Of a stretch of DNA of 64,000 bases, positions 1 through 61,243 are shown one piece after another. The stretch lies in the sequence record LR588166.1; one strand, written 5' to 3'. Every line of letters starts with the position of its first letter. Position 1 is the stretch's first letter. The translations under genes were made by a program, and so were the position numbers. The notes under the pieces are model-generated. The model did no database searches. It was not told where the DNA came from and saw nothing but the letters and a program-made list of their open reading frames with translations.

Positions 1-2277
1 GATATATTCGGTAATAATGCTAAAGCCATTAAGCCATCTAGCATAAATGAAAAAATGACTCAAATGAAAATGCTAGATTTTTCGCAAACGTGCGAAATAG
101 ACGTCAGGCCAGAATTTAGATGCTTGGAAGTAAACTATAAGAATGCACCTATGCCAGATTTACATGTTGCATTCTTCGATATCGAGACCGCGTTTGATCA
201 AAAACGCGGTTATGCCGACCCGGCTGATCCTTTTAATCCCATTATATCAATATCTGTATATCTGCAATGGATGCAGCAAATGGTTTGCTTAGCATTAGCA
301 CCAGAGACTATATTGCCAGAAGATGCACAACGCATAGCATCAGAAGTAGGCGAAACAATTATATGTAAAAATGAAAAAGAAATGCTAAGTATGTTTATTG
401 ACTTAGTAGAAGATGCAGATATTTTATCAGGTTGGAACTCAGAACGGTTCGATATTCCTTATACTTTTAACAGAATTGTAAAATTATTAGGTAAGAATGA
501 ACTAAGAAAATTATGCCTTTGGGATCTTATGCCCAAGAAGCGCAATATTGAACAAGAAGGCGGCAGTAGTTTTGTTACATTCGAAACGTTTGGTAGAATA
601 CATTTAGATTATCTCCAATTGTATAAAAAATATAATTACGAAGAACGTCATAGTTACTCGTTAGATTCTATTTCGGAAATCGAACTAGGTGAACGAAAAG
701 TTCCATACAACGGAACATTAGACAAACTTTATAAATATGATTTTAAAAAGTTTTTAGAATATAACATTCAGGATACTCGACTCCTAGATAAGTTAGATAG
801 AAAATTAAAATATATAGATCTAGCTTCCACCATTGCACATAGTAATTGCATTCCTATCCCTACTGTTATGGGTGCAGTAGCTACAACCGAACAAGCAATT
901 ATAATCGAAGCACATAATAACGGCATGGTAGTGCCATCTAGGCAACGTTTTAAAAATAATGATACACTTAAAGCTGCGGGCGGTTGGGTAGCATATCCTA
1001 AAGTAGGACTGCATAGAGATATTGGCTCTAGTGACTTGAATTCACTGTATCCTTCTGTGTTAAGGGCACTAAACATGAGCCCAGAAACTATTATAGGACA
1101 GGTTCGATTAACGCTTACTAACCCTGCAATCGAAGAATGGTGTGCAAAAGGCGGAACAAAACATACATTTGCTGCATGGTGGAACGATAGGTTTACCACT
1201 TTAGAAATGGAATATGTGTTAAACAAAGACAGGGGTACTATATTAACGTTAGATATGGCAGACGGGCGCTCGTTTGAACTGTCAGGTGCCGAAATATACG
1301 AATTAGTATTCAACAGTGGTCAGAATTGGCATATCAGTGCTAACGGAACTATATTCACACAAGACAGAGCAGGTGTAATTCCGTTACTACTTACAAGATG
1401 GTATGCAGAACGTAAAGGGATGCAGAAAATTGCATCAGATTATAATTCTTTAGATAAAGAACACCATAGCGACAAAACTGTATTTTTAGAAGATAAATCA
1501 GTATTAGATGGAATATGCGTAGGCGAAGTTGAATTAGCAGACCATTATAATATTAATGATGTATATGTTGCAGCTACATTAAAAAATCTTGTCGAATCAA
1601 AAAATTGGCAAGAAGTAGCAATATATATGAAAAAGTATGGACTAGAAGTGTCGTCTGACAATTCAATTGTTATGTCAGATTCCCATATGCAAAACGAATA
1701 TTACGAATATTGGGATAAAGCCCAGTTAGTTCGTAAAATTGGATTAAACAGCTTATATGGCGGACTACTTAACGAACATTCTAGATTCTACGATAAAAGA
1801 CTAGGACAGAGTACTACACTTACTGGGCGCTGTATCACTAGACATATGGCTTCTAAGACAAACGAAATGTTCACTGGCATTTACGATCACGAAGGCGATT
1901 GTGTAATTTATGGCGATACAGATAGTGTAGATGGATCAACTATCCTAAATACTTCTTTAGGTAAAATAACTATAGAAGAGTTGTTTAATGTGTCTGACAA
2001 GCATGTAGTTCATGCAGAAAAAGAATTTGCTTCGAACGAAGATGTTATGGTAATGTCATGGGACAATTCTGCAAAACAACCGTATATGGGGCATATAAAC
2101 TATGTGTACCGACATGAAGTAGAAAAAGAGTTATTCGAAATAGAAGACAACAACGGAAATAAAGTTATAGTAACCGAAGATCATTCTATTATGGTTATAC
2201 GTAATGCAGAACTATTAGAAGTTAAACCCACAGATTTAACAGACAGTGATATAATATTATCTATTGTATATGAATAA
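1..2277 (+). CDS. Family B DNA polymerase, N-terminal fragment (5'-truncated by the window) fused to an N-intein
   Basis: Frame is open from base 1. ExoI FFDIET, ExoII GWNSERFD, ExoIII YNIQD, region A DLNSLYPS, region B KIGLNSLYG and region C YGDTD, followed directly by intein sequence. Confidence 0.97.
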   Translation, partial: DIFGNNAKAIKPSSINEKMTQMKMLDFSQTCEIDVRPEFRCLEVNYKNAPMPDLHVAFFDIETAFDQKRGYADPADPFNPIISISVYLQWMQQMVCLALAPETILPEDAQRIASEVGETIICKNEKEMLSMFIDLVEDADILSGWNSERFDIPYTFNRIVKLLGKNELRKLCLWDLMPKKRNIEQEGGSSFVTFETFGRIHLDYLQLYKKYNYEERHSYSLDSISEIELGERKVPYNGTLDKLYKYDFKKFLEYNIQDTRLLDKLDRKLKYIDLASTIAHSNCIPIPTVMGAVATTEQAIIIEAHNNGMVVPSRQRFKNNDTLKAAGGWVAYPKVGLHRDIGSSDLNSLYPSVLRALNMSPETIIGQVRLTLTNPAIEEWCAKGGTKHTFAAWWNDRFTTLEMEYVLNKDRGTILTLDMADGRSFELSGAEIYELVFNSGQNWHISANGTIFTQDRAGVIPLLLTRWYAERKGMQKIASDYNSLDKEHHSDKTVFLEDKSVLDGICVGEVELADHYNINDVYVAATLKNLVESKNWQEVAIYMKKYGLEVSSDNSIVMSDSHMQNEYYEYWDKAQLVRKIGLNSLYGGLLNEHSRFYDKRLGQSTTLTGRCITRHMASKTNEMFTGIYDHEGDCVIYGDTDSVDGSTILNTSLGKITIEELFNVSDKHVVHAEKEFASNEDVMVMSWDNSAKQPYMGHINYVYRHEVEKELFEIEDNNGNKVIVTEDHSIMVIRNAELLEVKPTDLTDSDIILSIVYE
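1924..2274 (+). mobile_element. N-terminal half of a split intein (IntN, 117 aa, Ser1)
   Basis: Starts SVDGST right after YGDTD. Block B TEDH (TxxH) is present. Ends at a stop codon with no HN terminus. Contains no Cys. Confidence 0.93.
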
Positions 2278-3952
2278 AGAATATTATCAGTCATACGCAA
2301 AAGAATTAAAAAAGAATAATAAGAAAGAATACAATCGTATTCTTTCTTTGTATGAGCCTGTATTCGATAAATGGGTTGCATTCAAGTATTATATAGAAGG
2401 AATATCGCCGCCTGTATGTAAAGAATGCAGTAATAGAATAACTGTTTCGGCAAAACAAGCAGAATATCACACAGAATGCAAATATAATAAACACAAGTAT
2501 TCATTCGATAAATTTATAAAATGCATAGATGATGACCAATACATATATTGTGTGTGGAATGGATATATTCCGACATCTAACAATATAACATACAGATGCA
2601 CTAAACACGGCATAATTGTTCAAAAACTTAGTTCTAGACTAAAAGGTCACAAATGCCAAAAATGTTCAGCTGAGCGTAAAGTAAGTCTAGATAACTTTAA
2701 TAACTGGAAAACGCAGTGTTCTAAAATACATAATAATTTTTATGATTATTCTGTATCTACTGATTTTACATTCTTAACAAAAGATGTATCTATTAAATGT
2801 CCAATACATGGAATATTTAAACAAAGAGCAAACGTTCATCAATCGGGTCACGGTTGTAAAAAATGCTCGTTCGAAGCCATCGGTCATAGATTATCATATG
2901 ACACAGATTCTTTTATAGAAAGAAGTAACAATGTTCATAATAATTTTTATGACTATACCAAAACTATATACACTAACATTAGAGATAAAGTTATTATAAC
3001 ATGTCCGATACACGGCGACTTTAATCAGATAGCATATTATCATACTGCCGGACACGGTTGTCAGAAATGCGATTTAGATAAAGTAGCAGAAACTACCTAT
3101 AGATCTAAGGCAGAAATAGAAATATTTGATTTAGTTAAATCTTATTGCTCAGATACAATTCATTCATACAATAAATTTGGATTCGAATTAGACATATATG
3201 TTCCTAGTAAAAATCTTGCAATAGAATATAATGGACTTTATTGGCATTCTTCTAAACATATAGAAACTGATCAAAAGTATAAAACATACCATCTTGATAA
3301 AACCACTACATGCGAACAAAATAATATCCAATTATTACACATTTTTGACAACGAATGGCATACTAAAAAAGATATATGGATCTCGGTAATAAAAAATAAA
3401 CTAGGTTTATCTAATAAAATATATGCAAGAAAAACAGAAATTAAAGAAGTTAATTTCGATGATGCAAAGCAATTTGCTGAAACGAATCATTTGCAGGGTC
3501 ATGCACAATTTCGGTATGCATACGGATTGTATTATTTAGATCAATTAGTTTCTTTATTAACAATTGCAAAACCCAGGTTTAATAAAAATGCAAACTGGGA
3601 AATAGTAAGATTTTGTAACCTAAATAACACAAGTGTAATTGGTGGGTTTTCTAAATTATTAAAGGTAGTTTCTTGTAATTTTACAGGCAAGATAGTATCA
3701 TATGCAAATAGGCGCTGGTCCGCAGGAAACGTTTATGAAAAAAACGGATTTGCCAAAACTTCAATAATAGCTCCTGGATTTTATTATACTGACTTCAAAG
3801 ATACATATAATAGATTATCTTTCTCTAAAGACAAGGCAAAAGTTAAATTAAAAAATTATAATAATTCAGTTAGCGTAGTAGAAAATATTTACGCAAACGG
3901 ATATGGCAGGATTTGGGATTCAGGAAATATTGTTTATACAAAGGATTTATAA
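2270..3952 (+). CDS. Free-standing putative homing endonuclease (Zn-ribbon repeats, PD-(D/E)xK-like nuclease, C-terminal domain)
   Basis: Repeated C-[TP]-[KI]-HG and CxxC motifs, ELDIYVPSKNLAIEYNGLYWHS nuclease-like motif. ATG 2270 overlaps the IntN stop, and its own stop abuts ATG 3953. Confidence 0.8.
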   Translation: MNKEYYQSYAKELKKNNKKEYNRILSLYEPVFDKWVAFKYYIEGISPPVCKECSNRITVSAKQAEYHTECKYNKHKYSFDKFIKCIDDDQYIYCVWNGYIPTSNNITYRCTKHGIIVQKLSSRLKGHKCQKCSAERKVSLDNFNNWKTQCSKIHNNFYDYSVSTDFTFLTKDVSIKCPIHGIFKQRANVHQSGHGCKKCSFEAIGHRLSYDTDSFIERSNNVHNNFYDYTKTIYTNIRDKVIITCPIHGDFNQIAYYHTAGHGCQKCDLDKVAETTYRSKAEIEIFDLVKSYCSDTIHSYNKFGFELDIYVPSKNLAIEYNGLYWHSSKHIETDQKYKTYHLDKTTTCEQNNIQLLHIFDNEWHTKKDIWISVIKNKLGLSNKIYARKTEIKEVNFDDAKQFAETNHLQGHAQFRYAYGLYYLDQLVSLLTIAKPRFNKNANWEIVRFCNLNNTSVIGGFSKLLKVVSCNFTGKIVSYANRRWSAGNVYEKNGFAKTSIIAPGFYYTDFKDTYNRLSFSKDKAKVKLKNYNNSVSVVENIYANGYGRIWDSGNIVYTKDL

Positions 3953-4207
3953 ATGCATAATCTAACAAAACACCTTTTAGGTGTATTTTCTGCAAAAACA
4001 GAAGACGAAGAATATAACAGTGCAAAAAGAGCGTTAGAAGAATTAAACAAAAATATAAAAGAAAGAGATCCTAATAAATTTAATGTGTCTTTAGGAAAGG
4101 TATCTAAAGTAACTAATTTAGGAAAAAAGAAACAATATGTATACGATATAGGGATGAAAAATCCCGATAATCCGTATTTCTTTGGAAATAATATATTAGT
4201 TCACAAT
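3953..4207 (+). mobile_element. C-terminal half of the split intein (IntC, ends His-Asn, +1 Ser at 4208)
   Basis: Block F VYDIG and block G FFGNNILVHN. Ligation restores YGDTD-SCYF. Confidence 0.93.
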
Positions 4208-5092
4208 TCTTGCTATTTTACTGCATGGCCTGCAGTAAAAGACCTTGTAGAATCTGGTGAAATGGAATGGGATAAAGATACTGTCATTAAATTATACGAC
4301 AACGTTTCGTCACAAGTAAGTGATACATTTCCAGAATTTTTAAAACAAACATTTAATGTTCCATATAAAAACTCAGAAGGTGTTATTAAGTCAGGTAGGG
4401 AAATTGTAGCTACTTCTGGTCTTTTTATTAAAAAGAAACGTTATGCTGCTATGATGTATGATAAAGAAGGTACTAGATACGACGACGAAAACAGCCCAGG
4501 AAAAGTAAAAGCAATGGGTCTGGACCTACGTCGGTCAGATACGCCTAAATTTGTCCAAACATTCCTTATGGAAATTCTAGTTATGGTGCTAACACATAAA
4601 ACAGAAGATGAAGTAATAGAATATATTAGAGAATTTAAAAAAGAATTTAATAAAATGAAACCGTGGGAAAAGGGAATGCCAAAAGGCGTCAACGGTATCA
4701 GTACATATGAAGATAAATTAGAAGAACACATGAATAAAAAGTTAGCAGGAAGAGAGTCTAGAATCACTGTCCCAGGTCACGTGTCTGCTGCGATGAATTG
4801 GAATAAACTAAAGCTTATCAATAAAGACCTACATACTCCTAAAATCTCAGATGGTCAAAAATGTGTTGTTTGTTATTTAAAAGAAACAGCAGACAATCAT
4901 TTTACTAGTATAGCATATCCTGTAGATGAATTGCACTTACCAGAATGGTTTACGTCTTTGCCATTTGATGAAGATTTAATGAGAGAAAAAGTAGTAGATA
5001 ACAAAGTTAAGAACCTTTTAGGTATTCTAAAATGGGATTTTAGTAAAACAGAAGAAGCTGCTGCACACTTCGATTCGCTGTTTGGTTGGTAA
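3953..5092 (+). CDS. C-intein fused to the C-terminal fragment of the family B DNA polymerase
   Basis: VYDI...ILVHN|SCYF junction, then KKRYA and KAMGLDLRRSDTPK palm/thumb motifs. Confidence 0.96.
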   Translation: MHNLTKHLLGVFSAKTEDEEYNSAKRALEELNKNIKERDPNKFNVSLGKVSKVTNLGKKKQYVYDIGMKNPDNPYFFGNNILVHNSCYFTAWPAVKDLVESGEMEWDKDTVIKLYDNVSSQVSDTFPEFLKQTFNVPYKNSEGVIKSGREIVATSGLFIKKKRYAAMMYDKEGTRYDDENSPGKVKAMGLDLRRSDTPKFVQTFLMEILVMVLTHKTEDEVIEYIREFKKEFNKMKPWEKGMPKGVNGISTYEDKLEEHMNKKLAGRESRITVPGHVSAAMNWNKLKLINKDLHTPKISDGQKCVVCYLKETADNHFTSIAYPVDELHLPEWFTSLPFDEDLMREKVVDNKVKNLLGILKWDFSKTEEAAAHFDSLFGW

Positions 5093-5114
5093 TCAAAAAC
5101 TATACTTTGTACAC

Positions 5115-5143
5115 TTGCATTATGAAAATATTTAATGTATAAT
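5115..5143 (+). promoter_or_regulatory. Sigma70-type promoter
   Basis: TTGCAT-17 nt-TATAAT upstream of the ORF at 5173. Confidence 0.6.
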
Positions 5144-5172
5144 TCACACACATCTTAGGAGAATAATAAGTA

Positions 5173-5919
5173 ATGATTGTAGACAATTTAAAGGACGTAG
5201 TTCGTAACACTCACGGTTTGGGTTTTATAGATACTGTTAAAATTATTGGTTCTGTAAATGAAACTAAATTAGAAGCTATGTCAACCAATAAAACTGTAGT
5301 TATGTACGGTTCTTTAAAAAAATCCATTCCGGGGTTAGACGATACTGTAGGTTTAAGTAGAATGTCTGTACTGAGCGGTATGTTAAATTTCCCACCATAT
5401 TCGGGAGATGATGCTGAAGTTTCTATTAAGAAACAAGAACGTAACGGTGAAGAAATTCCTGCAGAAATTGTATTTTCTTCTTCGACGGGTCATAAATCGT
5501 CGTACCGGTTTATGGCACGAGATACAGTAGACGAAGTGCTAAAAGTTCCGCCGTTTAGAGGAGTTGTGTGGGATATAGTTATTCAACCTACTAAACAAGC
5601 GATGAAGGATCTTCAATATTTCAGTGCTGTATTGGGTTCTTATGAATCTAACTTTTTAGTTAAAGTAACAGACGGTGTTTTAGAATTCCACATAGGTACC
5701 GGTGCTACTAGCGACCGTACTGTTGTACCATTTGCAAAAGATGTAAAGAGCACATTACGCAATAACTGGTCCTGGCCATTACCAGAAGTGTTAGCAATTC
5801 TAAAAAACGCAGATAGTGGCAAATGTACTATGTCTATTTCTAGCCAGGGTGCATTAATGATTGAACTCGATACTGGGTTAATAGAAGTTCAATATATTCT
5901 TCCTGCAAAAAGTGCATAA
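5173..5919 (+). CDS. Probable DNA polymerase sliding clamp (gp45-like)
   Basis: 248 aa, directly downstream of the polymerase, beta-rich repeating pattern, ends YILPA. Inferred from size and context. Confidence 0.55.
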   Translation: MIVDNLKDVVRNTHGLGFIDTVKIIGSVNETKLEAMSTNKTVVMYGSLKKSIPGLDDTVGLSRMSVLSGMLNFPPYSGDDAEVSIKKQERNGEEIPAEIVFSSSTGHKSSYRFMARDTVDEVLKVPPFRGVVWDIVIQPTKQAMKDLQYFSAVLGSYESNFLVKVTDGVLEFHIGTGATSDRTVVPFAKDVKSTLRNNWSWPLPEVLAILKNADSGKCTMSISSQGALMIELDTGLIEVQYILPAKSA

Positions 5920-6255: not shown

Positions 6256-7878
6256 ATGAAAAATTTATCAAACAGTCAAAAAGATTATGCGATCTATTTG
6301 CCTGCAATTAGTGGGTTTTACACAAAACAATTAGACAGTTCTATTAACGATCCGTCTACAAGAAAAATACCTAGCTTTCCTAATGGATATAATACTCTTA
6401 ATTTTTTAGATCCATCTAGCGATACATTCTTTTACGGGTATGGATTATATTCTGCAGGCCATGCAGAGCTGTCTTTATCTAGAACTGATGCAAAAGAATG
6501 GATGATCCAAGCCAGGGACAAAACACAAACAACAGTTATTGCAGATTCGGGTGGTTTTCAGGTAGCTACTGGTGTAATTAAATTAAACTGGGATGATTTT
6601 AAAGGAGCTAGCGGAGATAAAATAAGAAATGAAATTTTAAAATGGTGTGAACATACCGCCGACTGGTCAATGACACTAGATGTTCCTGCGTTTGCTGCTA
6701 CTCCTCCGTACAGTTCAAAAACCGGTCTTAATAAATTCGAAGATACATTAGATTATTCTCTTCATAATTTACATTATTACATGAAGAACAGAACTCCTGG
6801 CGCAACTAAATTCCTTAGTGTATTATCGGGATCAGATGTAGATACATCTAAAATTTGGTACGACAACGTAAAAGCATTTAGTGACCCCGCTAAAGTAGTA
6901 GAAATGGGATATCCAGCTAGTCATACACTCGAAGGATATGCATTTGCTGGTATAAACATGAGAAATATGTATTGTGCTCTTTCTCGATTCTTAGATCTAA
7001 TAGATGACAATATTATTTCAGATAAAAACTGGATACACTTTCTCGGACTAGGCAGGACTGATTGGGCTTGTTTCTTAACATCTATTCAGCGAAATATAAG
7101 AAAACATTATAATCCCAATATTAACATAAGTTTTGACGCAGCTTCTCCGTTTGTTTCTGTAGCATACGGTCTTGCATATAACTATAATTATTTTAATCCC
7201 AAACGGTGGGGATATAATATGGATTCTGCCCCGGACAGTAGAGAGTTTAGTGATAAAGATATTCCTATGCCGTTTATGAGTCCTATTATGGAAAAATTAT
7301 CATTAAAAGATATATGTCCATATCACAACGGTTATGGTATAATAAATGGTGTTAAAAATGCAAACTTTACAAAAGAAGATGTAGAAACTGCTCTCAAAGA
7401 AGGAAAAGATGCAGAATACGTGCCACCGAGTGCAAATAAAAATGGTAAAGTAGGTAAAACCAGTTGGGATTCACTTAGTTACTTATTAATAATGAATCAC
7501 AATGTTTACAATCATATAGCTGCAATCCAAGAATCTAATAGATTAGTTGATATAGAACGGTTGCGAGTTAAAGTAGATTACCGAGATTGGACTAGAGATA
7601 AAAAGAAAGGTACTATAGAAGTAAGTAATCACGTCCCTAGTTCGATTTTATACTTTGATCATTTTGTAGAAGTATTGCTAGATCCGAGTACTCCTAATAA
7701 GCGACAATTACTAGAAGATTATAGACCTATGCTAGACAGCATTAGTTTCGGTAATTATAACTCAAACTCATTTAACAGTCTTTTTGATGTAGATGCTACT
7801 GCAATTGAAGATGAAAATAAGTTTGCAGACATAAACGACGAAAAACTAACCGAATTAGAACAAGGATTAGACAATTAA
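6256..7878 (+). CDS. TGT-fold guanine transglycosylase (DpdA-like)
   Basis: TGT signature DSGGFQ, then MTLDVP, IHFLGLG and SFDAASP. Clustered with QueD-like and QueE genes. Confidence 0.8.
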   Translation: MKNLSNSQKDYAIYLPAISGFYTKQLDSSINDPSTRKIPSFPNGYNTLNFLDPSSDTFFYGYGLYSAGHAELSLSRTDAKEWMIQARDKTQTTVIADSGGFQVATGVIKLNWDDFKGASGDKIRNEILKWCEHTADWSMTLDVPAFAATPPYSSKTGLNKFEDTLDYSLHNLHYYMKNRTPGATKFLSVLSGSDVDTSKIWYDNVKAFSDPAKVVEMGYPASHTLEGYAFAGINMRNMYCALSRFLDLIDDNIISDKNWIHFLGLGRTDWACFLTSIQRNIRKHYNPNINISFDAASPFVSVAYGLAYNYNYFNPKRWGYNMDSAPDSREFSDKDIPMPFMSPIMEKLSLKDICPYHNGYGIINGVKNANFTKEDVETALKEGKDAEYVPPSANKNGKVGKTSWDSLSYLLIMNHNVYNHIAAIQESNRLVDIERLRVKVDYRDWTRDKKKGTIEVSNHVPSSILYFDHFVEVLLDPSTPNKRQLLEDYRPMLDSISFGNYNSNSFNSLFDVDATAIEDENKFADINDEKLTELEQGLDN

Positions 7879-10711: not shown

Positions 10712-11584
10712 ATGAAACACAGATATACTGAAAAGTTTTTCTCAGTCCAGGGAGAAAGCCTACATACCGGAAAACTATGCACTTGGCTTAGATTTTTCGG
10801 ATGTTCGTTGCAATGTAGGGGCTTTGGACAAAAAGAACCCGGAAATCCCGAAACATGGGTAGAACAACGACCGGATTTAATAGATGTAACAAACATTACA
10901 GATTATAAACAATTACCGACTCCTAAGTATGGATGTGATTCAGACTATTCTGTATTTGCTAAATTTAAACATCTTGCAACAGAAGTCGATCCTGTTGTAG
11001 TTGCAAATGAAATAAAACAATTAATTCCTAGTAAAACATTTGGTAAAAAAATAGGTCATGTATTTACGGGCGGAGAACCGTTAGTAAACCAAGAATCTAT
11101 AGTAGATATAGTAAATTATTGGATAGATACTAATGATTATCCTGCATGGATAGGAATAGAAACAAATACAACTAGACCGTTAGAAAAATGCTTAATCGAT
11201 TTAGTTAACAGATGTAAATCGATTGGTGTGCAATTTTATTTTTCTATGTCACCCAAACTACTTCATGTAGCAGGTGAACAACCCAAACGAGCTATCCATA
11301 TAAATTTAATGAAGGAATATATAGATATTGCACCGGATAGCTATCTAAAATTTGTAGTAAATGAAGATCAGCGATCGTGGGATCAAGCAAAAAGTATAGT
11401 AGACACATTAAATGCTGACGGGTATTTACCAGATGTGTGGGTTATGCCAGTCGGAGGCATTTATTCCCAACAAACAGACCCAGTAATTGGAAGACTTGCA
11501 GATAAAGCTATCTTCGAATACGAATGGAATGTTAGTTTACGTGTTCACGTATTAACCTGGGGTGACGATCAACTAGGTAGGTAA
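10712..11584 (+). CDS. queE: 7-carboxy-7-deazaguanine synthase (radical SAM)
   Basis: EKFFSVQGE, LRFFGCSLQC...GCDS, FTGGEP, IETN, SPK, KFVV, VMPVG, SLRVHVLTWG. Confidence 0.88.
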   Translation: MKHRYTEKFFSVQGESLHTGKLCTWLRFFGCSLQCRGFGQKEPGNPETWVEQRPDLIDVTNITDYKQLPTPKYGCDSDYSVFAKFKHLATEVDPVVVANEIKQLIPSKTFGKKIGHVFTGGEPLVNQESIVDIVNYWIDTNDYPAWIGIETNTTRPLEKCLIDLVNRCKSIGVQFYFSMSPKLLHVAGEQPKRAIHINLMKEYIDIAPDSYLKFVVNEDQRSWDQAKSIVDTLNADGYLPDVWVMPVGGIYSQQTDPVIGRLADKAIFEYEWNVSLRVHVLTWGDDQLGR

Positions 11585-19444: not shown

Positions 19445-19798
19445 ATGATCGTCAGCGAGATTATATATTCTATTTTCATAGCTGCATTAATAACAGTTAT
19501 GACTATACTATATATAAGTCTCAGAATAATAACATGTAAGATATTAAATAAGTCATTAAAGATTTCAGCTAATGTAATTATATATGGTACCTCTAATATA
19601 GAATATGTATATATTCCTGAAATAAAATATAAATTTCTTTCTTTTAAAATAACACATTCTGGTTTAGTTATGTTTGACAGAGAGTTTGGATTTAGGACAC
19701 TAAACGATGCCATAAATGCATTAAATATGTATGTAGACACCGATATTATAAAAATAGTATATAAAAAGGTACCCACATTTTATACTTGGCACGAATAA
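19445..19798 (+). CDS. Membrane-anchored hypothetical protein
   Basis: N-terminal TM segment, ATG 19445. Confidence 0.6.
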   Translation: MIVSEIIYSIFIAALITVMTILYISLRIITCKILNKSLKISANVIIYGTSNIEYVYIPEIKYKFLSFKITHSGLVMFDREFGFRTLNDAINALNMYVDTDIIKIVYKKVPTFYTWHE

Positions 19799-21294
19799 TG
19801 GATAATTTTGATATAGAATTAAAAGAACTCATAAAAAATACAAATCCTAACGCATTAGGAAATGTAGTAAAAAGTAAAAAAGAAATATATGAGGAATTAG
19901 TTCGTCGAACTAATTCCTTTCTTCGTGACGACGTTTCTGTAACAGAAAGGATTCATATATACTTAAATCCGGCTGATAATGTTTACTGTAAGTATGATAA
20001 CAAACGGACACTAAAGCGAAATAAAGATACAAAACAAACCCAATACGGATTTTGCGGAAATAAAAGTAAATGTAAATGTCATATGGAATGGTCTTTAAAA
20101 AATCATCCAGGCATGACACAATCCGGAAAAGAAAGTATGAAAACAAAGAGGATAAAAACTTGGATAGAAAAATACGGTGTCGATAATCCATCTAAGTCAA
20201 AAGATATTATTGCAAAACAGCAATTAAGTAAAAAACATATAAAGCCAGATCATAGAACTATAAAGGAACTGGGATATAAAAAAGTAGTAGAACGACTTTC
20301 TAACATACTCACCCCTACGTTTAGTATAGACGAGTACGAAGGGTGCTTTAGAAAAAATGTGTATGACTGGGTATGCAATGCATGCGGAAATATAGTTATC
20401 GGACACGTAGATTATGGGTCTACTCCGAGGTGCAATGTTTGTAATCCTATAACAAAGTCTGCCGGCGAGAATGAAATATCTAACTATATAGTATCGCTAG
20501 GATTTGATGTGATTAACAATGACCGAACTATATTATCTAACAAAGAATTAGATATAGTAATTAAAGGTACAAACATAGCAATAGAATATAATGGTTGTTA
20601 TTGGCATTCTACAAAACACAGAAAAAAATCATATCATGTAGATAAATTTATAGAATGCAGAGATAAAGGAATAAAGTTAATACAAATTTTAGATGTAGAT
20701 TGGATATCAAAACAAGACATAATAAAATCAAGGTTAAAATCTATTTTAGGTTGTAGTGATAGAATATATGCAAGGAATACAACTATAAAAGAAATAACAT
20801 TTAAAGAATCTTTAACTTTTTTAGAAGAAACTCACATCCAAGGTTCTTGTCAATCATCTGTAAGACTAGGCCTATACGACAGTGAGAATATGTTAGTAGC
20901 AGTAATGACATTTGGGAAATCTAGATATACAAAAGAGGAATATGAATTACTTAGATATGCTAGCAAAAATACTGTTGTAGGAGGAGCCAGCAAACTTCTT
21001 AAATATTTCATAAAAACATATTCCCCTAAATCTATTATTACATATGCAGACAGGTGTTGGTCAGATGGAAATTTATATAAACAGCTCGGGTTTACAAATG
21101 TAACTAAGAATGACAGAAATACAGGATATTGGTATATAAAAGACAACATAAAATATCATAGATCTAATTTCATAAAATCTAAGATTTCTAATAAAAATAA
21201 TTTACATCTAAGCGAATCAGAAATAATGGATAGTTTAGGTTATTTAAAATATTACGATTGCGGCAATTACAAATATACATTGCAGGTACGCTAG
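19798..21294 (+). CDS. Putative homing endonuclease, paralog of 2270..3952
   Basis: CxxC motifs, ELDIVIKGTNIAIEYNGCYWHS, RIYARNTTIKE, VVGGASKLLK, ITYADRCWSDGNLY and DCGN all match the first copy. Confidence 0.8.
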   Translation: MDNFDIELKELIKNTNPNALGNVVKSKKEIYEELVRRTNSFLRDDVSVTERIHIYLNPADNVYCKYDNKRTLKRNKDTKQTQYGFCGNKSKCKCHMEWSLKNHPGMTQSGKESMKTKRIKTWIEKYGVDNPSKSKDIIAKQQLSKKHIKPDHRTIKELGYKKVVERLSNILTPTFSIDEYEGCFRKNVYDWVCNACGNIVIGHVDYGSTPRCNVCNPITKSAGENEISNYIVSLGFDVINNDRTILSNKELDIVIKGTNIAIEYNGCYWHSTKHRKKSYHVDKFIECRDKGIKLIQILDVDWISKQDIIKSRLKSILGCSDRIYARNTTIKEITFKESLTFLEETHIQGSCQSSVRLGLYDSENMLVAVMTFGKSRYTKEEYELLRYASKNTVVGGASKLLKYFIKTYSPKSIITYADRCWSDGNLYKQLGFTNVTKNDRNTGYWYIKDNIKYHRSNFIKSKISNKNNLHLSESEIMDSLGYLKYYDCGNYKYTLQVR

Positions 21295-29218: not shown

Positions 29219-29307
29219 ACGTATACCGTAAAAATTTTTACCATACTATAAAATATGTATATTCAATAGTCAACTGTGTTTGGTAACAAAATGTGGTAAT
29301 TAGGCAC

Positions 29308-29336
29308 TTGACATTGGTATTGTCTTTTAGTAAACT
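29308..29336 (+). promoter_or_regulatory. Sigma70-type promoter with no ORF downstream
   Basis: TTGACA-17 nt-TAAACT. Confidence 0.7.
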
Positions 29337-29341
29337 GTGCG

Positions 29342-29972
29342 CTTGCGTAAGAAATGTATATACGATAGTGCTATATGTATATACAGACAAGTGGCTCTGT
29401 TCCATCATTGGATATTGGTAGTAGAAACTATCCCCATCGTGCTGTTATTGTAGTTCCGATAGTGTCGGGTTAACGTTTTAACAGTTATTTAAATTATGAT
29501 TTTGGGTGCCACAGAGATTGTACTTACTAAAAGGACTTAGTAAGAACCGCATATAATCTCGAAACTTGTGTAGGATGTTGGTCTAACCACGGCATAGAAT
29601 ATATGCCTCAACTACTACACGGAAAGGATGATGCTCTGGTTGAAACAGAGTTTCTATAAATCTTTCAGTATAGATTCCGTATGACTGAAAGTTGAAACAC
29701 CAACATCAATGGACTATAGTTTTTGTTAGTGTGGCTATAGTTTATTCCGGCATTGAAAGTATATGCAGTGATGCGAGACAGTAAGCATTAGTAGCAACTG
29801 TATATATGAGTAAGAGGATGCGTTTACAATGAGGAATTACCTATCGGTGCCCGCCTCAGGGATTGCACTTCCCAACGTACACTAAACTTCGTACCATACC
29901 GAAACATACGTTTCTGTTATTACGATTTCCTTCCCAAACGGGGAGGAAATCTTCTCCGCCCGAATATCATAA
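29342..29972 (+). ncRNA. Candidate large structured non-coding RNA (~630 nt), family unassigned
   Basis: ORF-free and more GC-rich than its flanks. More than 12 nested helices by eye, a long-range helix 29494-29506/29959-29972, and G-U wobbles that favour the + strand. Confidence 0.6.
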
Positions 29973-30013
29973 GATCAAAAACATTAATAATTAATATATA
30001 AAATTCGTTTAAT

Positions 30014-30067
30014 TAGTTATTAAGTATATGAGTTGTAGTTTACGAAAACGAATATACTTAATAACTA
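30014..30067. repeat. Perfect 16-bp inverted repeat
   Basis: TAGTTATTAAGTATAT (30014-30029) / ATATACTTAATAACTA (30052-30067). Confidence 0.9.
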
Positions 30068-30183
30068 CCAGTGAAGCTTGCTTCGCTGTTTAAAATTGCA
30101 ATTTGTATTTTCAATTTTATATTTTGAAATGTGTTTTTGAAAATCAATCTATAAAATATAATTTTAAATATTATTTTTAAATG

Positions 30184-30270
30184 TCATTTTGTGATTTTAA
30201 TTTAAAATAATATTTCATGATTTAAAATGGAAATATATTAAACAATATCATTTTGTGATTTTAATTTAAA
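30184..30270. repeat. 23-bp direct repeat in a very AT-rich zone
   Basis: TCATTTTGTGATTTTAATTTAAA at 30184 and 30248. Confidence 0.85.
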
Positions 30271-31039
30271 CAATTTCATATAAAACTATTTTGTCTATTT
30301 CTTTTATAATCTTAAAGTCATTAAAAACCCTACATTTGTAGGGTTTTTATTTGATTATATGGTATATAGTATTCGGTTTTAGACATTCAGATTATTATAA
30401 TTAATAATATCTGTATGATAACTATATTTTATAGAAATACATTTACTAATTACATTTGCCAATAAATGGTTATTTTCTTTATATTTAATACGTCTCGGGA
30501 GTATATAGCAAATATTATAAATCGAGACACATAATATTTGTGTCTATATTTTTTTTAGTTTCATTACTCTACATAATCGATTATTAATGTATACAGTTAT
30601 ATACGCTATATTGTAATAACAAACCAAATTATATAGAGAATATACATTAAACTCTGTTTTGTGTTAAATCGACACTACATATATTATTATGCATTGATAC
30701 TTGCCGTATATAAAACTAATTAGTTATTATGTGCTTTAAAAGAATTCCATTATAATTAGTTTTCTGTGTCATATTCAAATGATGAAAAACATAATTCTTT
30801 CATCTATTTTTATTAAATGTTATTCAAGATTTATAATATAATTTTATAATGTTTGCAATTTATGACACAAGCTATTTTAATAGAATTATACTATTCAAAG
30901 TTTTGACTTATTTTGTGTGTAAACGACAAAAATAGGCATATATATAAAAAGCACACCTGTTTCCTGTATGAAACAAAATAGTATTTTATTAAAAATAGTG
31001 TATAGTAGTAAAAAACATCATTAATCATGCACGCAATTT

Positions 31040-50829: not shown

Positions 50830-50906
50830 CCCTCGGTAGCTCAGTTGGTTAGAGCGCGCGACTCATAATCGCTAGGTCACTGGTTCGAATCCAGTTCGAG
50901 GGACCA
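50830..50906 (+). tRNA. tRNA with CAT anticodon, Ile2 (lysidine)-like, copy 1
   Basis: Cloverleaf with CCA. Anticodon arm GCGA-CTCATAA-TCGC resembles bacterial tRNA-Ile2. Elongator Met is not excluded. Confidence 0.9.
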
Positions 50907-50928
50907 ATTTTAAGATGTTGTGCTTTTA

Positions 50929-51013
50929 GCCCGAGTGGTGAAATTGGTAGACACAGGAGACTTAAAATCTCCCGCTTCGCAGCGTACCGGTTCGAGTCCG
51001 GTCTCGGGTACCA
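50929..51013 (+). tRNA. tRNA-Leu(TAA), copy 1
   Basis: GGAGA-CTTAAAA-TCTCC, long variable arm, CCA. Confidence 0.95.
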
Positions 51014-51063
51014 AACAAAAGATATAAATACTTAACAAGATAGGAAACTATTCTAAAATTAAA

Positions 51064-51139
51064 TGGCTAGTAGCTCAGTTGGTAGAGCAAATGACTGTTA
51101 ATCATTGGGTCGTAGGTTCGAGTCCTACCTAGCCAGCCA
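51064..51139 (+). tRNA. tRNA-Asn(GTT)
   Basis: AATGA-CTGTTAA-TCATT, G73, CCA. Confidence 0.95.
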
Positions 51140-51165
51140 ATTACACTTTGTTGTATATTCAATAT

Positions 51166-51241
<76 letters not shown>

Positions 51242-51310
51242 ATTTTAAATAACAGTTGTATCTAAAGAGATACAATAGTCTAAATAAAATATTCATATAA
51301 TGTTTCAAAC

Positions 51311-51387
51311 GGGACTTTAGCTCAGTTGGTTAGAGCGCGCGACTCATAATCGCTAGGTCACTGGTTCGAATCCAGTAAGTCCCACCA
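51311..51387 (+). tRNA. tRNA with CAT anticodon, Ile2 (lysidine)-like, copy 2
   Basis: Identical to copy 1 except the acceptor stem (GGGACTT/AAGTCCC), CCA. Confidence 0.9.
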
Positions 51388-51437
51388 ATTTTTATATACA
51401 AATCAAACTATACTTAAACTATATAATGAATGAATAT

Positions 51438-51522
51438 GCCCGGTTGGTGAAATCGGTAGACACAGGAGACTTAAAATCTCCCGACGAAAGTCGTGCCAGT
51501 TCGAGTCTGGCACCGGGCACCA
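51438..51522 (+). tRNA. tRNA-Leu(TAA), copy 2
   Basis: Same anticodon arm as copy 1, CCA. Confidence 0.95.
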
Positions 51523-52388
51523 AACCCCTAAAAAAGGAACATATTATAGTATGTTCCTTTTTTATTATGATATTTTTATTATGAATGAAATAATGCATAT
51601 ATCTGCCAACACATACGTAATAGAATATCGCGTATTAAACAAGTTAGTAGTTACTATAAAAGATAATAGATCTTTCACATTATGGATACATTTTGATATC
51701 GGTGCATTTTCTATAGCATGGAAATACAATGCAATATAGAATTAAAAAATGAAATACATTATTAATTTACAATACTCAACAGAAGTAATATACATGCCTT
51801 GTTTCAACATATTATCGCTATGCGATAATAGATCTGTTACTATCCTTTCTATTACTATGATATTTAAGATAAGATATTATTTGCATCCGATGTACCGTTA
51901 TATTCTATAATACATAATATTTTTATTGTAACAAATACCAGAAGTGCTTAGATAATATATAGCAATTCTGTTTATTATCGATATTATGGTATACTTAGTA
52001 TTCTTATTAACCTTATTACATAGAATAAAGAATGGAAAAAATTTTAACTATTTCGCATAAAACATTGATATGTGAACTGTCGTTATTAAAATGGTCGAAA
52101 TCCATAGTTTGTGTTTATTCTGGCGAAATAGTATGGTATGCTCGGCTAGATAAGAACTGTTATGTTGTACGGATAAGATGATGATAATGAACTGTATTTT
52201 TTCCTATTCGTATTATTTAGAACGCATCGTATGTCATGCAAAAATCTACAAAGGGTTTGTAGTCAGTAAAAATACTTTTTGTGAGAAATCCGTAATAGCT
52301 TTATACTTAATAAATAGTGGTAGTTATTTTCATAAATGTTACGTCGATCATTACTTAATTGTATAGATATATATTTTAATAAAAATAG

Positions 52389-52417
52389 TTGACCGAACAA
52401 ACAAAACAGTATATAAT
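52389..52417 (+). promoter_or_regulatory. Sigma70-type promoter for tRNA-Arg
   Basis: TTGACC-17 nt-TATAAT. Confidence 0.7.
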
Positions 52418-52468
52418 GTTACGCATACAAAGCATTATTACAAAGCTATCATTAGTTGCACAAGATAT

Positions 52469-52545
52469 GCGCTCGTAGCTCAGCTGGATAGAGCATCCGC
52501 CTTCTAAGCGGATGGTCGGGGGTTCGAATCCCTCCGGGCGCGCCA
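52469..52545 (+). tRNA. tRNA-Arg(TCT)
   Basis: TCCGC-CTTCTAA-GCGGA, CCA. Confidence 0.95.
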
Positions 52546-53084
52546 ATTTTAAAGAGTGTTGTGTTATGCAAACAATAAGATTTGACATAAGACTTCTTCG
52601 TTATAGTATGAAACAAGGTTTCTGTTGTATAGGTAAAGATATATTTGAAGTGTGCAGAAAAACTCGGATCAGTCCAGGTCAGCTAAACTTACGAAAAAAT
52701 TATATAGGACGAGTATTAATCGGAATTGATTCGAACTATAATCTGCACAATACCTGTTTAGTAGGCTGGACTCGGTATAAAAATATTATAGTATAAAAAT
52801 TTATATTAATAATATGAATAGATGCAAAGAACATCTACAATACAGAACAATCAAAAAGCATACATCGACTTGTAGGAAATGCAAAGAGTTATCGTTACAA
52901 ATAAAATTATTTTGGCTTCAACAACAAGCATTCAGTATTAGAACCGATACTAGCGGAATATACATATTCGATATTAAATATAATTCTATTTACGTATACT
53001 CTGTAGCTTGGTATAATACAGAATTATACGGTAAAGGGAAAATAATTTTAGAATAAACATGTATATATAAGAGTACCTCAAATA

Positions 53085-53417
53085 ATGAATAATTATTCTA
53101 ATGATACAGATATTCTAAAATGGATAAAGCGTAACAATAGAAAAAATGCACGTCTAATTTCATATATAGACGGAATATATAATATTGTTTATTTTGATGG
53201 CGGAAAAGCAAGAGTTGGCATAGTAAAAGACAATATGCACTGCAGATACGGAATACATAGTCGTGGATCTATGTATTCGAAAGATATAATGAGCCTGTGG
53301 CAATCTAGTACAGGTTCGTGTTCGCCTGATGATGTAAAGATTATGCAAGATTATCTAGACGATAAATGTATGCTTCCGGAATTTGATTTTTCTCAGATTA
53401 AAAATTTAAAATGGTAA
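53085..53417 (+). CDS. Hypothetical protein
   Basis: 110-aa ORF. Confidence 0.7.
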   Translation: MNNYSNDTDILKWIKRNNRKNARLISYIDGIYNIVYFDGGKARVGIVKDNMHCRYGIHSRGSMYSKDIMSLWQSSTGSCSPDDVKIMQDYLDDKCMLPEFDFSQIKNLKW

Positions 53418-53440
53418 ATAATATAACAATATAGTTTTAT

Positions 53441-53517
53441 CGCAGGGTATGCAAGAGGTCTAAGCAGAAAGGCTCATAACCTTTTTATCGTGGGTTCGAA
53501 TCCCACCCCTGCAACCA
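53441..53517 (+). tRNA. Initiator-type tRNA-fMet(CAT)
   Basis: C1:A72 mismatch, AAAGG-CTCATAA-CCTTT, CCA. Confidence 0.88.
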
Positions 53518-53526
53518 GTTTTATAT

Positions 53527-53603
53527 CTAGGCATAGCTCAAGTAGGTAGAGCACTTGCTTTGGGAGCAAGAGGTTGGGGATTCGAGGTCTCCTGCCTAGA
53601 CCA
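53527..53603 (+). tRNA. tRNA-Pro(TGG)
   Basis: CTTGC-TTTGGGA-GCAAG, CCA. Confidence 0.9.
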
Positions 53604-53612
53604 ATTTACTAT

Positions 53613-53685
53613 GCAGTCCTAGCTCAATTGGTAGAGCACTGTCCTTCCAAGTCAGATGTTACGGGTTCGAGTCCCGTGGGCTGCT
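53613..53685 (+). tRNA. tRNA-Gly(TCC), no encoded CCA
   Basis: CTGTC-CTTCCAA-GTCAG with one T:T mismatch, ends T-CAA. Confidence 0.85.
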
Positions 53686-54430
53686 CAATATTCTAATATA
53701 ATTGATTGGTATATCTAATCGATGATTCATGTAGTGGATAAATATGGAAGTATAGTTATACCATCTAATATAACGGTGCTGGAAATACAGGCATACACAA
53801 CAGAGTTATTGTATGTAAGAAAATCTCATTGTTTATGTTTATACATTCCTAATATAGGAAATTATGCTTTATGGTTTTTAGACAGATAGGATAAAAATAT
53901 AAATTGTTCTGTTTAAGGAACCAACATTAAATGGCAGGTTGCATATTTAGGCTCGATTTGTCTATTTTTCGTGAAAATGTATATAGTATTTCTAGGTTGT
54001 CTTATACAAAATCTATATGTGTTTCAATAAAAACTAAACCGACAAGCAATAGAAGACAATTAGAAATATATGTTGTAGATAAAACAACTGATTTTTTAAT
54101 TGCATGCAAATATTTTTAGCTTATCTATTATTTTATAAATTGACTTACCTTTAAATAACCATTATATATCTGTTATAATAACTATTCTAAATAGAAATAA
54201 AACCATAAATACACATAATAACGGTGTGGATTTATGGAAAACATATTTAGGATATCTATTAATGCTAACGAAGGTATTATACGAATATCCCCTACTTACT
54301 TTTTTAATGGTGTTTTTTATTCAAAGCATTTGAATATTTTTATAATAGATCCCGACGGATATTTAATAAGAAAAATATATACTTGTAGTACATTCTTATG
54401 ATGATTTCTTTTAAATATACAAAATAGCAT

Positions 54431-54459
54431 TTGACACAAGTATAATTATTTCGTATAAT
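54431..54459 (+). promoter_or_regulatory. Consensus sigma70 promoter
   Basis: TTGACA-17 nt-TATAAT. Confidence 0.8.
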
Positions 54460-54490
54460 AAGTGTATAAAATAACAAAAGAGAATTTTAA

Positions 54491-54850
54491 ATGATTTCCA
54501 AAATTCAAATTGTATACGGAATATATCTTCCTACTGCCGATGCAAAAATTATATACGAAGACTTGGAATACGAATCTAATAAAATAAATAAAAATATTAG
54601 ATTATTTGCAAATGATGCATATTTAGAAGATAAGATTTTAGAAAATAAGGAATTCGAAGATAATCCCTATGTTCCGCACTTTTATGGTATCTTTTGTAAA
54701 GAATTCGATAATGACCAAAGTGCATACTTATATAATGTTCCTAAATCTTTTATAGATGAATATAATAATGTAGCTCCAGCTATTTTAGCTAGACTTGGTT
54801 ATTTAGATAGAGTTGCAGGAAAACAACATTGTAGAATAATTTACGAATAG
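54491..54850 (+). CDS. Hypothetical protein
   Basis: ORF downstream of the consensus promoter. Confidence 0.75.
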   Translation: MISKIQIVYGIYLPTADAKIIYEDLEYESNKINKNIRLFANDAYLEDKILENKEFEDNPYVPHFYGIFCKEFDNDQSAYLYNVPKSFIDEYNNVAPAILARLGYLDRVAGKQHCRIIYE

Positions 54851-54864
54851 AATTAACTAGTTTT

Positions 54865-54954
54865 GGAGAGGTGATAGAGTCTGGTTTATTATACTAGTCT
54901 TGAAAACTAGCGGATCGAAAGGTCCCGTGGGTTCGAATCCCACCCTCTCCGCCA
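54865..54954 (+). tRNA. tRNA-Ser(TGA)
   Basis: CTAGT-CTTGAAA-ACTAG, long variable arm, G73, CCA. Confidence 0.93.
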
Positions 54955-54959
54955 AATAT

Positions 54960-55049
54960 AGATACTTGACCGAGTGGCTTAAGGTGCTTCCCTGCTAAGG
55001 AAGTGAGTTTGAAAAAGCTCCGTAGGTTCGAATCCTACAGTATCTGCCA
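54960..55049 (+). tRNA. tRNA-Ser(GCT)
   Basis: CTTCC-CTGCTAA-GGAAG, long variable arm, G73, CCA. Confidence 0.93.
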
Positions 55050-60631: not shown

Positions 60632-61243
60632 TTGATTAAGTTAGTAAAACCCATTGCATATTATGGACAGAAATTTGGTATCGCTGTTTCGGGCGGTATT
60701 GATTCTATGGTTGCATTGTCCTTCTTAAAGAAATATCCACAAAATAACTTCGATGTCTTTCATGTAAACCACGGATCGGAGTATGATATCAAAGCAGAGC
60801 AATTTGTGAGAGATTATTGCAGCGACAATAAAATAAATTGCCATGTATACTGCATTAACACAAAAAAACCAAAAGGTTGCAGTTGGGAAGAACATTGGCG
60901 AAACGAACGATATAAATTTCTGCACTCTCATGAATTAGAAATCATGACTGCACATACACTAGACGACAACGTAGAGACGTGGTTGTTTTATAGTATGCAC
61001 GGTTCGCCTCGTATCATTCCGTATCGGAAAAAAAATGTCATCCGACCGTTTATGCTTACTACAAAAAACGAATTTAAAAAATATGCGAAAAGTAATGGTG
61101 TACAATGGTTAGAAGATCCTAGTAACCGAGACACTAATTTTAATAGAAATCAAATTCGACATAATATAATTCCTCAAGCACTTAAAGTAAATCCAGGATT
61201 GTTTAAAGTGATTGCAAAAAAAGTAAGAGAAGAGAATGAATAA
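60632..61243 (+). CDS. tilS: tRNA(Ile)-lysidine synthetase, catalytic domain only (203 aa)
   Basis: PP-loop IAVSGGIDS, HVNHG, RNERY, TAHTLDDNVET, IRPF, EDPSNRD, RNQIRHNIIP. Confidence 0.88.
   Translation: MIKLVKPIAYYGQKFGIAVSGGIDSMVALSFLKKYPQNNFDVFHVNHGSEYDIKAEQFVRDYCSDNKINCHVYCINTKKPKGCSWEEHWRNERYKFLHSHELEIMTAHTLDDNVETWLFYSMHGSPRIIPYRKKNVIRPFMLTTKNEFKKYAKSNGVQWLEDPSNRDTNFNRNQIRHNIIPQALKVNPGLFKVIAKKVREENE

Follow-up and report, generated by a model that had tools for sequence, protein, structure and literature searches.

The DNA polymerase gene of Pseudomonas phage vB_PaeM_MIJ3 (MIJ3), a jumbo phage, is most probably a fractured gene with a class-1 split mini-intein, in which two polypeptides are trans-spliced to a full-length polymerase and the homing endonuclease gene (HEG) between the intein halves is mobile; we put the probability of this reading at about 0.85. 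The locus lies at the left end of the 64,000-nucleotide (nt) stretch that was analysed (the window; LR588166.1 124001-188000, 100% identity), and all positions of MIJ3 features below refer to the window. Megablast with positions 1-5200 returned MIJ3 itself (LR588166.1 124001-129200, 100% identity) and 10 further Wroclawvirus (PA5oct-like) jumbo-phage records at 98-99%. GenBank lists three consecutive genes at the locus, polB, an 'HNH homing endonuclease III' and a second DNA polymerase gene, and the gap gene is annotated in PA5oct as a 'Hef-like homing endonuclease'. The MIJ3 split intein is real but already known, its locus having been published in 2019 and its family being well studied. That the full-length polymerase requires protein trans-splicing is a well-supported prediction, drawn from the anatomy of the locus, its catalytic residues, homology to an intein proven to trans-splice, colinearity of the exteins and purifying selection.

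The anatomy was checked with a six-frame list of open reading frames (ORFs) and a script run on the window. Three ORFs on the + strand form one locus with the layout of a fractured gene: 1-2277 (cut by the window edge), 2270-3952 and 3953-5092. The first begins with the PolB N-extein (1-1923, +; GenBank MIJ3_00153), which matches Pfam DNA_pol_B_exo1 and DNA_pol_B and contributes the exonuclease domain together with motifs A, B and C of the polymerase. With the 135 nt by which its annotated start precedes the window, the N-extein comes to 686 amino acids (aa), and motif C (YGDTD, 1909-1923) closes it. The N-terminal intein half (IntN) follows at 1924-2277 (+), with 117 codons (1924-2274) opening SVDGST and a TAA stop (2275-2277); it was delimited by Pfam Intein_splicing, by its match to the structure 9HTH and by alignment with relatives. 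The Ser1 codon (1924-1926) stands directly after YGDTD, the NX motif is Arg63-His64 within ...NYVYRH... (His codon 2113-2115), block B (N3) reads T84-E-D-H87 (2173-2184), and the net charge of IntN is -14.

The free-standing HEG (2270-3952, +; 560 aa) starts with an ATG that overlaps the end of IntN by 8 nt, the two lying in different frames. The ATG of the C-terminal intein half (IntC) at 3953 abuts the HEG stop codon and has AAGGA 7 nt upstream. IntC comprises the first 85 aa (3953-4207) of a 379-aa ORF and ends VYDIG...ILVHN. Its residues 1-41 form an N-terminal extension (3953-4075, +), set apart by PDB matches that begin only at residue 43, and residues 42-85 form the core (4076-4207, +), which matches the C-terminal regions of 8CPN/8CPO and 9HTH and aligns with relatives. 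Block F of the core is V-Y-D (Asp65, 4145-4147), block G is His84-Asn85 (4202-4207), and the net charge over the last 40 residues is +4. The PolB C-extein (4208-5092, +; 294 aa and a stop) opens with Ser+1 (4208-4210) followed by C-Y-F and, from its alignment to RB69 gp43, supplies the rest of the palm and the thumb with its KKRY motif. An initial annotation, made from the sequence letters, had read YGDTD/SVDGST (a slash marks the junction), a 117-aa IntN with TEDH and a separate ORF with VYDIG...ILVHN/SCYF; the ORF list and script confirmed all of these elements, the Ser1 and Ser+1 nucleophiles, and the lack of cysteine in both halves (0/117 and 0/85). GC content is lower in the intein and HEG DNA (0.27-0.32) than in the exteins (0.34-0.36). 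Scans of 1-5300 gave 32 promoter-like sites, where 29 were expected, and 5 terminator-like ones, where the expectation was 1.8 +/- 1.6. One site flagged by the terminator scan, at 3970-3984 (+), 17 nt past the IntC start codon, is a 6-bp GC-containing hairpin with a T-rich run after it, which may be due to chance.

Judged from sequence comparison, the intein assignment is far beyond chance. Pfam Intein_splicing (PF14890, gathering cut-off 35.8 bits) scores 37.7 bits at the end of the first ORF, above the gathering score. The best solved-structure match of IntN is 9HTH, a crystal structure of the fused cysteine-less Aes123 PolB1 split intein (E 8e-12), and a PDB sequence search aligns IntC, over residues 43-88, with C-terminal regions of the PolB16 and Aes123 inteins; a PHROGs search with IntC alone gave no match. 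All class-1 intein blocks are present in the MIJ3 halves, including the histidine of the NX motif (His after Arg or Lys) that is a signature of Ser1 oxyester inteins (PMC10189870). An alignment of 20 cis relatives shows DTD-S1, the NX His, T-x-D-H-S, V-Y-D and H-N-S+1 to be invariant. Metagenomic relatives were collected by a profile-free exhaustive search of 1.8 billion representative proteins (757 matches at E <= 0.001); among 120 that were examined, the HN/S junction is present in all 82 with a recognisable junction. P0009, one of the cis relatives, shares 48-49% identity with each MIJ3 half, and its AlphaFold2 (AF2) model, built on a 20-sequence alignment, has a HINT core with predicted local distance difference test (pLDDT) values above 90; the best PDB match of this model is again 9HTH, with a target-normalised template modelling (TM) score of 0.86. 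The fold was thus tested on P0009, as a stand-in for the MIJ3 halves. The proposal of a naturally split intein with an intervening endonuclease gene is thus well supported by sequence, homology and comparative evidence, and the suggested comparison with known PolB split inteins identified Aes123 PolB1 (9HTH), with the same site and gene layout, as the closest solved structure.

The complete lack of cysteine is unremarkable, Cys-free halves being common among the homologues. At the extein Cys frequency (13/917), the chance of finding none in 202 residues is about 0.06. Cys-free split IntN at xDTD/S make up 20 of 82 metagenomic homologues and Cys-free IntC 64 of 75; IntN of L015 and L016, which are the closest relatives, does contain two non-catalytic Cys, and the Cys-free state of both MIJ3 halves holds in all 10 Wroclawvirus genomes. 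The initial annotation had described Ser/Ser, cysteine-less split inteins as uncommon. Such an intein is indeed present here, but the combination is normal for this PolB family and is no peculiarity of the locus.

The exteins fit together as parts of one polymerase. The last 68 residues of the N-extein align to RB69 gp43 555-623, with the final residue falling exactly on D623, and C-extein residues 69-238 align to RB69 gp43 698-849 (the thumb, including the KKRY motif), leaving the first 68 C-extein residues to cover 624-697. The exteins are colinear with RB69 gp43 across D623/S624 and nothing is missing at the junction; the homologue of Agrobacterium phage Atu_ph07 reads YNDTDSAYFTAY across the site, uninterrupted. 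From this colinearity and the uninterrupted allele it follows that the spliced product would be a normal 980-aa polymerase. The initial annotation held that the intein reassembles the polymerase active site in trans. The split does lie right after motif C, but motifs A, B and C with all catalytic carboxylates already sit on the N fragment, and the C fragment provides the strand after motif C and the thumb; splicing would restore the motif-C hairpin and a covalent link to the thumb, not an active site made half and half.

Selection was assessed by crude counts of synonymous and non-synonymous differences over the 5.2-kb region in 10 Wroclawvirus genomes. No gaps occur in the region, and 10/10 genomes keep the three ORFs intact. 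The crude ratios of non-synonymous to synonymous differences (pN/pS) are 0.04 for the N-extein, 0.05 for IntN, 0.12 for the HEG and 0.00 for the C-extein, which has zero amino-acid changes among these genomes. Constraint on the intein thus equals that on the polymerase, which is expected if failure to splice is lethal.

We propose the following mechanism, in which splicing occurs in MIJ3 and is needed. A class-1 mini-intein occupies the YxDTD/S site of a T4-type family-B DNA polymerase, and a free-standing Vsr-like HEG would have invaded it at the usual endonuclease-insertion loop. Two polypeptides would be made, N-extein-IntN (803 aa) and IntC-C-extein (379 aa), and the acidic IntN and basic IntC core would associate, presumably by electrostatic capture, and fold into a single HINT domain. 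An oxyester pathway would then begin with an N-O shift at Ser1, aided by the NX His64 and the block-B His87, and continue with transesterification to Ser+1, cyclisation of Asn85 and an O-N shift, yielding the 980-aa polymerase with a ...YGDTD-SCYF... junction. The HEG would be co-transcribed and translated from the same transcript, and its predicted endonuclease activity would make it the mobile part that spreads or retains the element.

Several points weigh against this reading. The natural Aes123 PolB1 intein, whose trans-splicing in vitro (PMC11923092) speaks in favour of the reading, reaches only ~30% splicing efficiency with purified fragments (PMC11923092); efficiency is therefore not predictable from sequence alone. 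A literature search found no experimental spliced product for MIJ3 or PA5oct. At the start of the third ORF the Pfam Intein_splicing score of IntC is 22.2 bits, below the gathering threshold, and no characterised split intein has an equivalent of the 41-aa IntC extension. Two pieces that are not covalently joined can also make a working T4-type polymerase, as in gp43 of Aeromonas phage 25 (PMC2677866), and polB of Atu_ph07 and of the related locus L022 is split at another site.

The last two points bear on an explanation that we regard as unlikely, namely that the intein halves no longer splice and act as a mere tight heterodimerisation module, the polymerase being a non-covalent two-chain enzyme. 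The phage 25 polymerase is cited as a split example (PMC2677866), and intein-less split family-B polymerases are found in related phages (Atu_ph07, L022 and the gp43A/gp43B split annotated in Aes508). These intein-less splits sit elsewhere, however, outside the motif-C hairpin. Residues that serve the chemistry alone (Ser1, NX His, T-x-D-H, block-F Asp, HN and Ser+1) are kept in MIJ3 and are invariant in divergent relatives, purifying selection on IntN is as strong as on the exteins, and an intein of 202 residues left in place at the catalytic hairpin of the palm would probably do harm.

The initial annotation had further inferred that splicing is a possible control point for replication. A checkpoint role, in which regulated and rate-limiting trans-splicing would set the timing or conditions of phage DNA replication, finds no support at this locus and seems quite improbable. 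Some inteins are condition-responsive, as far as can be taken from a review among the references of PMC10914365, and the Ser1 intein of PolB16 splices faster at pH 6 than at pH 7. The MIJ3 intein, however, has no Cys and hence no redox switch, the handle usually invoked for conditional splicing, and its three tightly packed adjacent genes (an 8-nt overlap; a stop abutting a start) suggest that they are expressed together and not controlled separately. The intein takes a cis form in close relatives and is missing from the site in more distant related phages; the function of the intein is therefore dispensable for this polymerase clade, and in the simplest reading the intein is a selfish element.

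Very improbable is a joining of the ORFs by RNA or translation, which the initial annotation had named as a possible refutation and which would take a group I or II intron with a HEG, or a frameshift with stop read-through: group I introns do occur in phage polymerase genes (annotated in Aes508 gp43; also LUZ24) and the HEG and IntC ORFs of MIJ3 share a reading frame with a single TAA between them, but recognisable intein halves on both flanks of the gap would make RNA splicing pointless, IntN and the HEG occupy different frames, and the IntN/HEG/IntC frame relations differ in the related loci L016, L020 and L021, so there is no conserved recoding arrangement. RNA splicing was rejected on a permissive Rfam scan of 1500-5200, which found no intron family and gave as its sole match a sub-threshold, chance-level PGK RNA on the minus strand (E 0.13), a gathering-threshold Rfam scan of the whole window finding tRNAs only; recoding was rejected on the absence of the shared HEG/IntC frame from L016, L020 and L021.

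Relatives of the intein fit the fractured gene with a trans-splicing intein. A tblastn search with IntN as query recovered the intein at its MIJ3 site, again laid out as IntN-HEG-IntC, in Aeromonas salmonicida phages (Aes123, Aes508 and others), Tenacibaculum phage PTm1 and Campylobacter phage CP21, and weaker, partial matches in Lak phages and a Vibrio phage. Among the best 150 of the 757 metagenomic matches, 113 end no more than 12 residues from the IntN match; these are natural splits, with some truncated gene calls. In L022 the intein is a contiguous cis form whose 202 aa match the sum of the MIJ3 halves (117 + 85), in L016 and L021 an orthologous DUF723/Vsr-like HEG (560 aa or 535 aa) fills the gap of the split, L020 is split with a different 286-aa ORF in the gap, and in L015 (Logan ERR3588747 contig) the split halves abut directly, with a 4-nt overlap and without an endonuclease. 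Several of these five loci keep neighbouring genes of the MIJ3 polymerase locus. The HEG slot is variable, as the fractured-gene model predicts, and the closer metagenomic relatives show every stage of the model of Dassa et al. (2009; PMC2677866). The family uses two registers of motif C, YGD/TDS (with Thr+1; Salicola phage SCTP-2, P0155 and some metagenomic relatives) and YGDTD/S (MIJ3). This comparative set of cis, split with HEG and split without HEG forms, two registers and tandems may help the study of how split inteins originate.

The tandems are metagenomic (P0001, P0016, P0017, P0024, P0102 and P0125), where some PolB fragments have two inteins two residues apart in the order YGD, cis mini-intein, TD, second intein, the latter often a split IntN. 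Separately, the polymerase is split upstream of motif B in Atu_ph07 (L019, 1416-4385 of that locus) and in L022 (2749-6647 of that locus), with no recognisable intein there; motif C is uninterrupted in Atu_ph07.

The HEG matches PHROG 559 and 3339 (HNH endonuclease, homing endonuclease; E 1e-117 and 2e-98) and consists of N-terminal Cys-rich repeats of the Pfam DUF723 type, a Vsr-like nuclease core (roughly aa 277-368) and, at the C terminus, a domain of some 170 aa. In hhalign a profile of MIJ3-type HEGs aligned over residues 277-368 to a profile of the Aes508, PTm1, CP21 and L020 endonucleases (VSR-annotated in Aes508, PTm1 and CP21) with a probability of 85% (E 6e-6), and ELD, IEYNG, YWH and FDNEW motifs are readable in the translation. 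The MIJ3 HEG is 41% identical to the HEG in the equivalent slot of metagenomic locus L016, and its L021 orthologue carries PF18741 (precomputed table). Against Pfam Vsr and MTES_1575 the polB HEG gave no match even at E 5, a PDB sequence search gave none either, and NCBIfam returned nothing meaningful for the HEG or neighbouring ORFs. An AF2 model of moderate quality (mean pLDDT 68, four-sequence alignment) finds its closest PDB counterparts in GNAT-fold acetyltransferases and the Mom protein of phage Mu (Foldseek E ~1e-4, target TM 0.5-0.66). These matches are tentatively assigned to the C-terminal 170 aa (~3425-3949), the aligned query range not being given, and this part may have a GNAT-like fold. 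The domain is also conserved in metagenomic orthologues and in a paralogue, a second free-standing endonuclease gene at 19798-21294 (+; 498 aa) that is 38% identical to the polB HEG over the nuclease core and C-terminal domain. The paralogue has sub-threshold Pfam matches to MTES_1575 (E 1e-4) and Vsr (E 6e-3) and has small membrane-like ORFs on one side and, on the other, a 394-aa ORF annotated 'DNA repair ATPase'; it was rejected as a second fractured gene, there being no intein blocks in its neighbours.

Elsewhere in the window, a 1.8-kb AT-rich stretch without annotated genes (29219-31039) separates leftward and rightward gene blocks. It has no ORF of at least 50 aa other than one of 56 aa at its left edge, contains several short inverted repeats (e.g. 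26-nt arms at 30014-30067) and is possibly a divergent control region. A 540-aa ORF (6256-7878, +) shortly after the polymerase gene gave no match in Pfam, PHROGs, NCBIfam or PDB; it has a D-S-G-G-F-Q stretch reminiscent of tRNA-guanine/DNA transglycosylases. An annotated queE (10712-11584, +) lies 3 kb beyond it. Modified G has been reported in PA5oct DNA (preprint, PMC12191111). A 12-tRNA cluster (50830-55049, +) includes three tRNA-Met(CAT) genes and a duplicated Met-Leu(TAA) pair, and an annotated tilS (lysidine synthase, 60632-61243) lies near it; both were noted in the MIJ3 paper (PMC6892783).

The charges of the intein halves differ from those of known relatives. In MIJ3 the N2 lobe of IntN carries -9 and the IntC core +4, against +8 and -11 in Aes508, and the MIJ3 polarity is reversed relative to Aes123, PTm1 and CP21; the cis SCTP-2 intein has no such charge segregation. 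An electrostatic 'capture' step is described for split inteins, and reversed charges therefore suggest orthogonality. The 41-aa IntC extension lies outside the minimal HINT fold. Of 75 metagenomic homologues, 62 have an IntC of 70-89 aa, and the examples that were read open with a similar H-x-L-T..LL motif; the counterpart of the extension in P0009 and other cis relatives is an internal insert, modelled with low confidence as two helices. The reversed charge polarity and the conserved extension may be small details that were previously unreported. Only tentatively do we suggest that the MIJ3 or Wroclawvirus-type intein is a distinct natural sub-type of cysteine-free split intein, marked by an IntN that is acidic and an IntC that is basic, the opposite of Aes123, CL and CLm, and by a helical IntC extension that is conserved.

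If that were true, the intein may splice efficiently and orthogonally to existing cysteine-less tools, and the extension may itself contribute to assembly or to fragment solubility. The gain for biology is small, as this is a textbook fractured gene in a phage replication gene that has been reported before for MIJ3. Protein chemists would like to have more cysteine-less split inteins from nature that combine efficiency with mutual orthogonality, and before the LCGC14 intein only one highly efficient cysteine-less example was known (PMC12707363). The MIJ3 intein is a reasonable candidate tool of modest practical value, being fully Cys-free, from a culturable mesophilic phage and of reversed charge relative to Aes123.

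The locus can be compared with several known systems. The MIJ3 genome paper (Imam et al. 2019, Front Microbiol, PMC6892783) describes a putative split intein at the identical locus (orf153, orf154 and orf155); it places blocks A, N2, B and N4 in the N-terminal half and blocks F and G in the C-terminal one, on either side of an 'HNH' endonuclease. It makes no mention of cysteine, serine, trans-splicing or Aeromonas inteins and contains no splicing experiment. That paper compares the MIJ3 intein with the SCTP-2 mini-intein, which lies two residues upstream of the MIJ3 site (YGD/TDS), has Thr+1 and ends in Lys-Asn, differences that it does not note. The fractured genes of Dassa et al. (2009; PMC2677866) share with MIJ3 the IntN-HEG-IntC layout, a phage DNA-replication gene as host and a Vsr-like HEG, and have, as MIJ3 does, an upstream stop and a downstream start at the edges of the HEG cassette; there is no essential difference.

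Research on cysteine-less Ser1/Ser+1 PolB split inteins is active and has produced structures and engineered variants (PMC11923092, PMC10189870). PolB16 OarG (8CPN), CP21 PolB1, LCGC14 PolB2 and the archaeal PI-PkoII (2CW7) have the HINT fold, oxyester chemistry and NX histidine seen in MIJ3. PolB16 is split atypically, with a 15-aa IntN, unlike MIJ3, and the archaeal Pol inteins are contiguous maxi-inteins with LAGLIDADG domains; sequence identity of these inteins to MIJ3 is low. The insertion xDTD/S, after the second Asp of motif C, is common to MIJ3, Aes508, PTm1 and CP21. The closest system is Aes123 PolB1 of Aeromonas salmonicida T4-like phages (engineered as CL and CLm), which occupies the same host protein at the same site and shares with MIJ3 the Ser1, the His-Asn end, the Ser+1, the K/R-His of the NX motif, the lack of Cys, a break at the endonuclease loop and an intervening ORF for a Vsr-like endonuclease. 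The two differ in that their IntN are ~34% identical, in that the MIJ3 IntC has 85 aa with its 41-aa extension and that of Aes123 39 aa, and in that the MIJ3 endonuclease has 560 aa, with extra DUF723 repeats and a C-terminal domain, against 353 aa at the Aes123-type locus.

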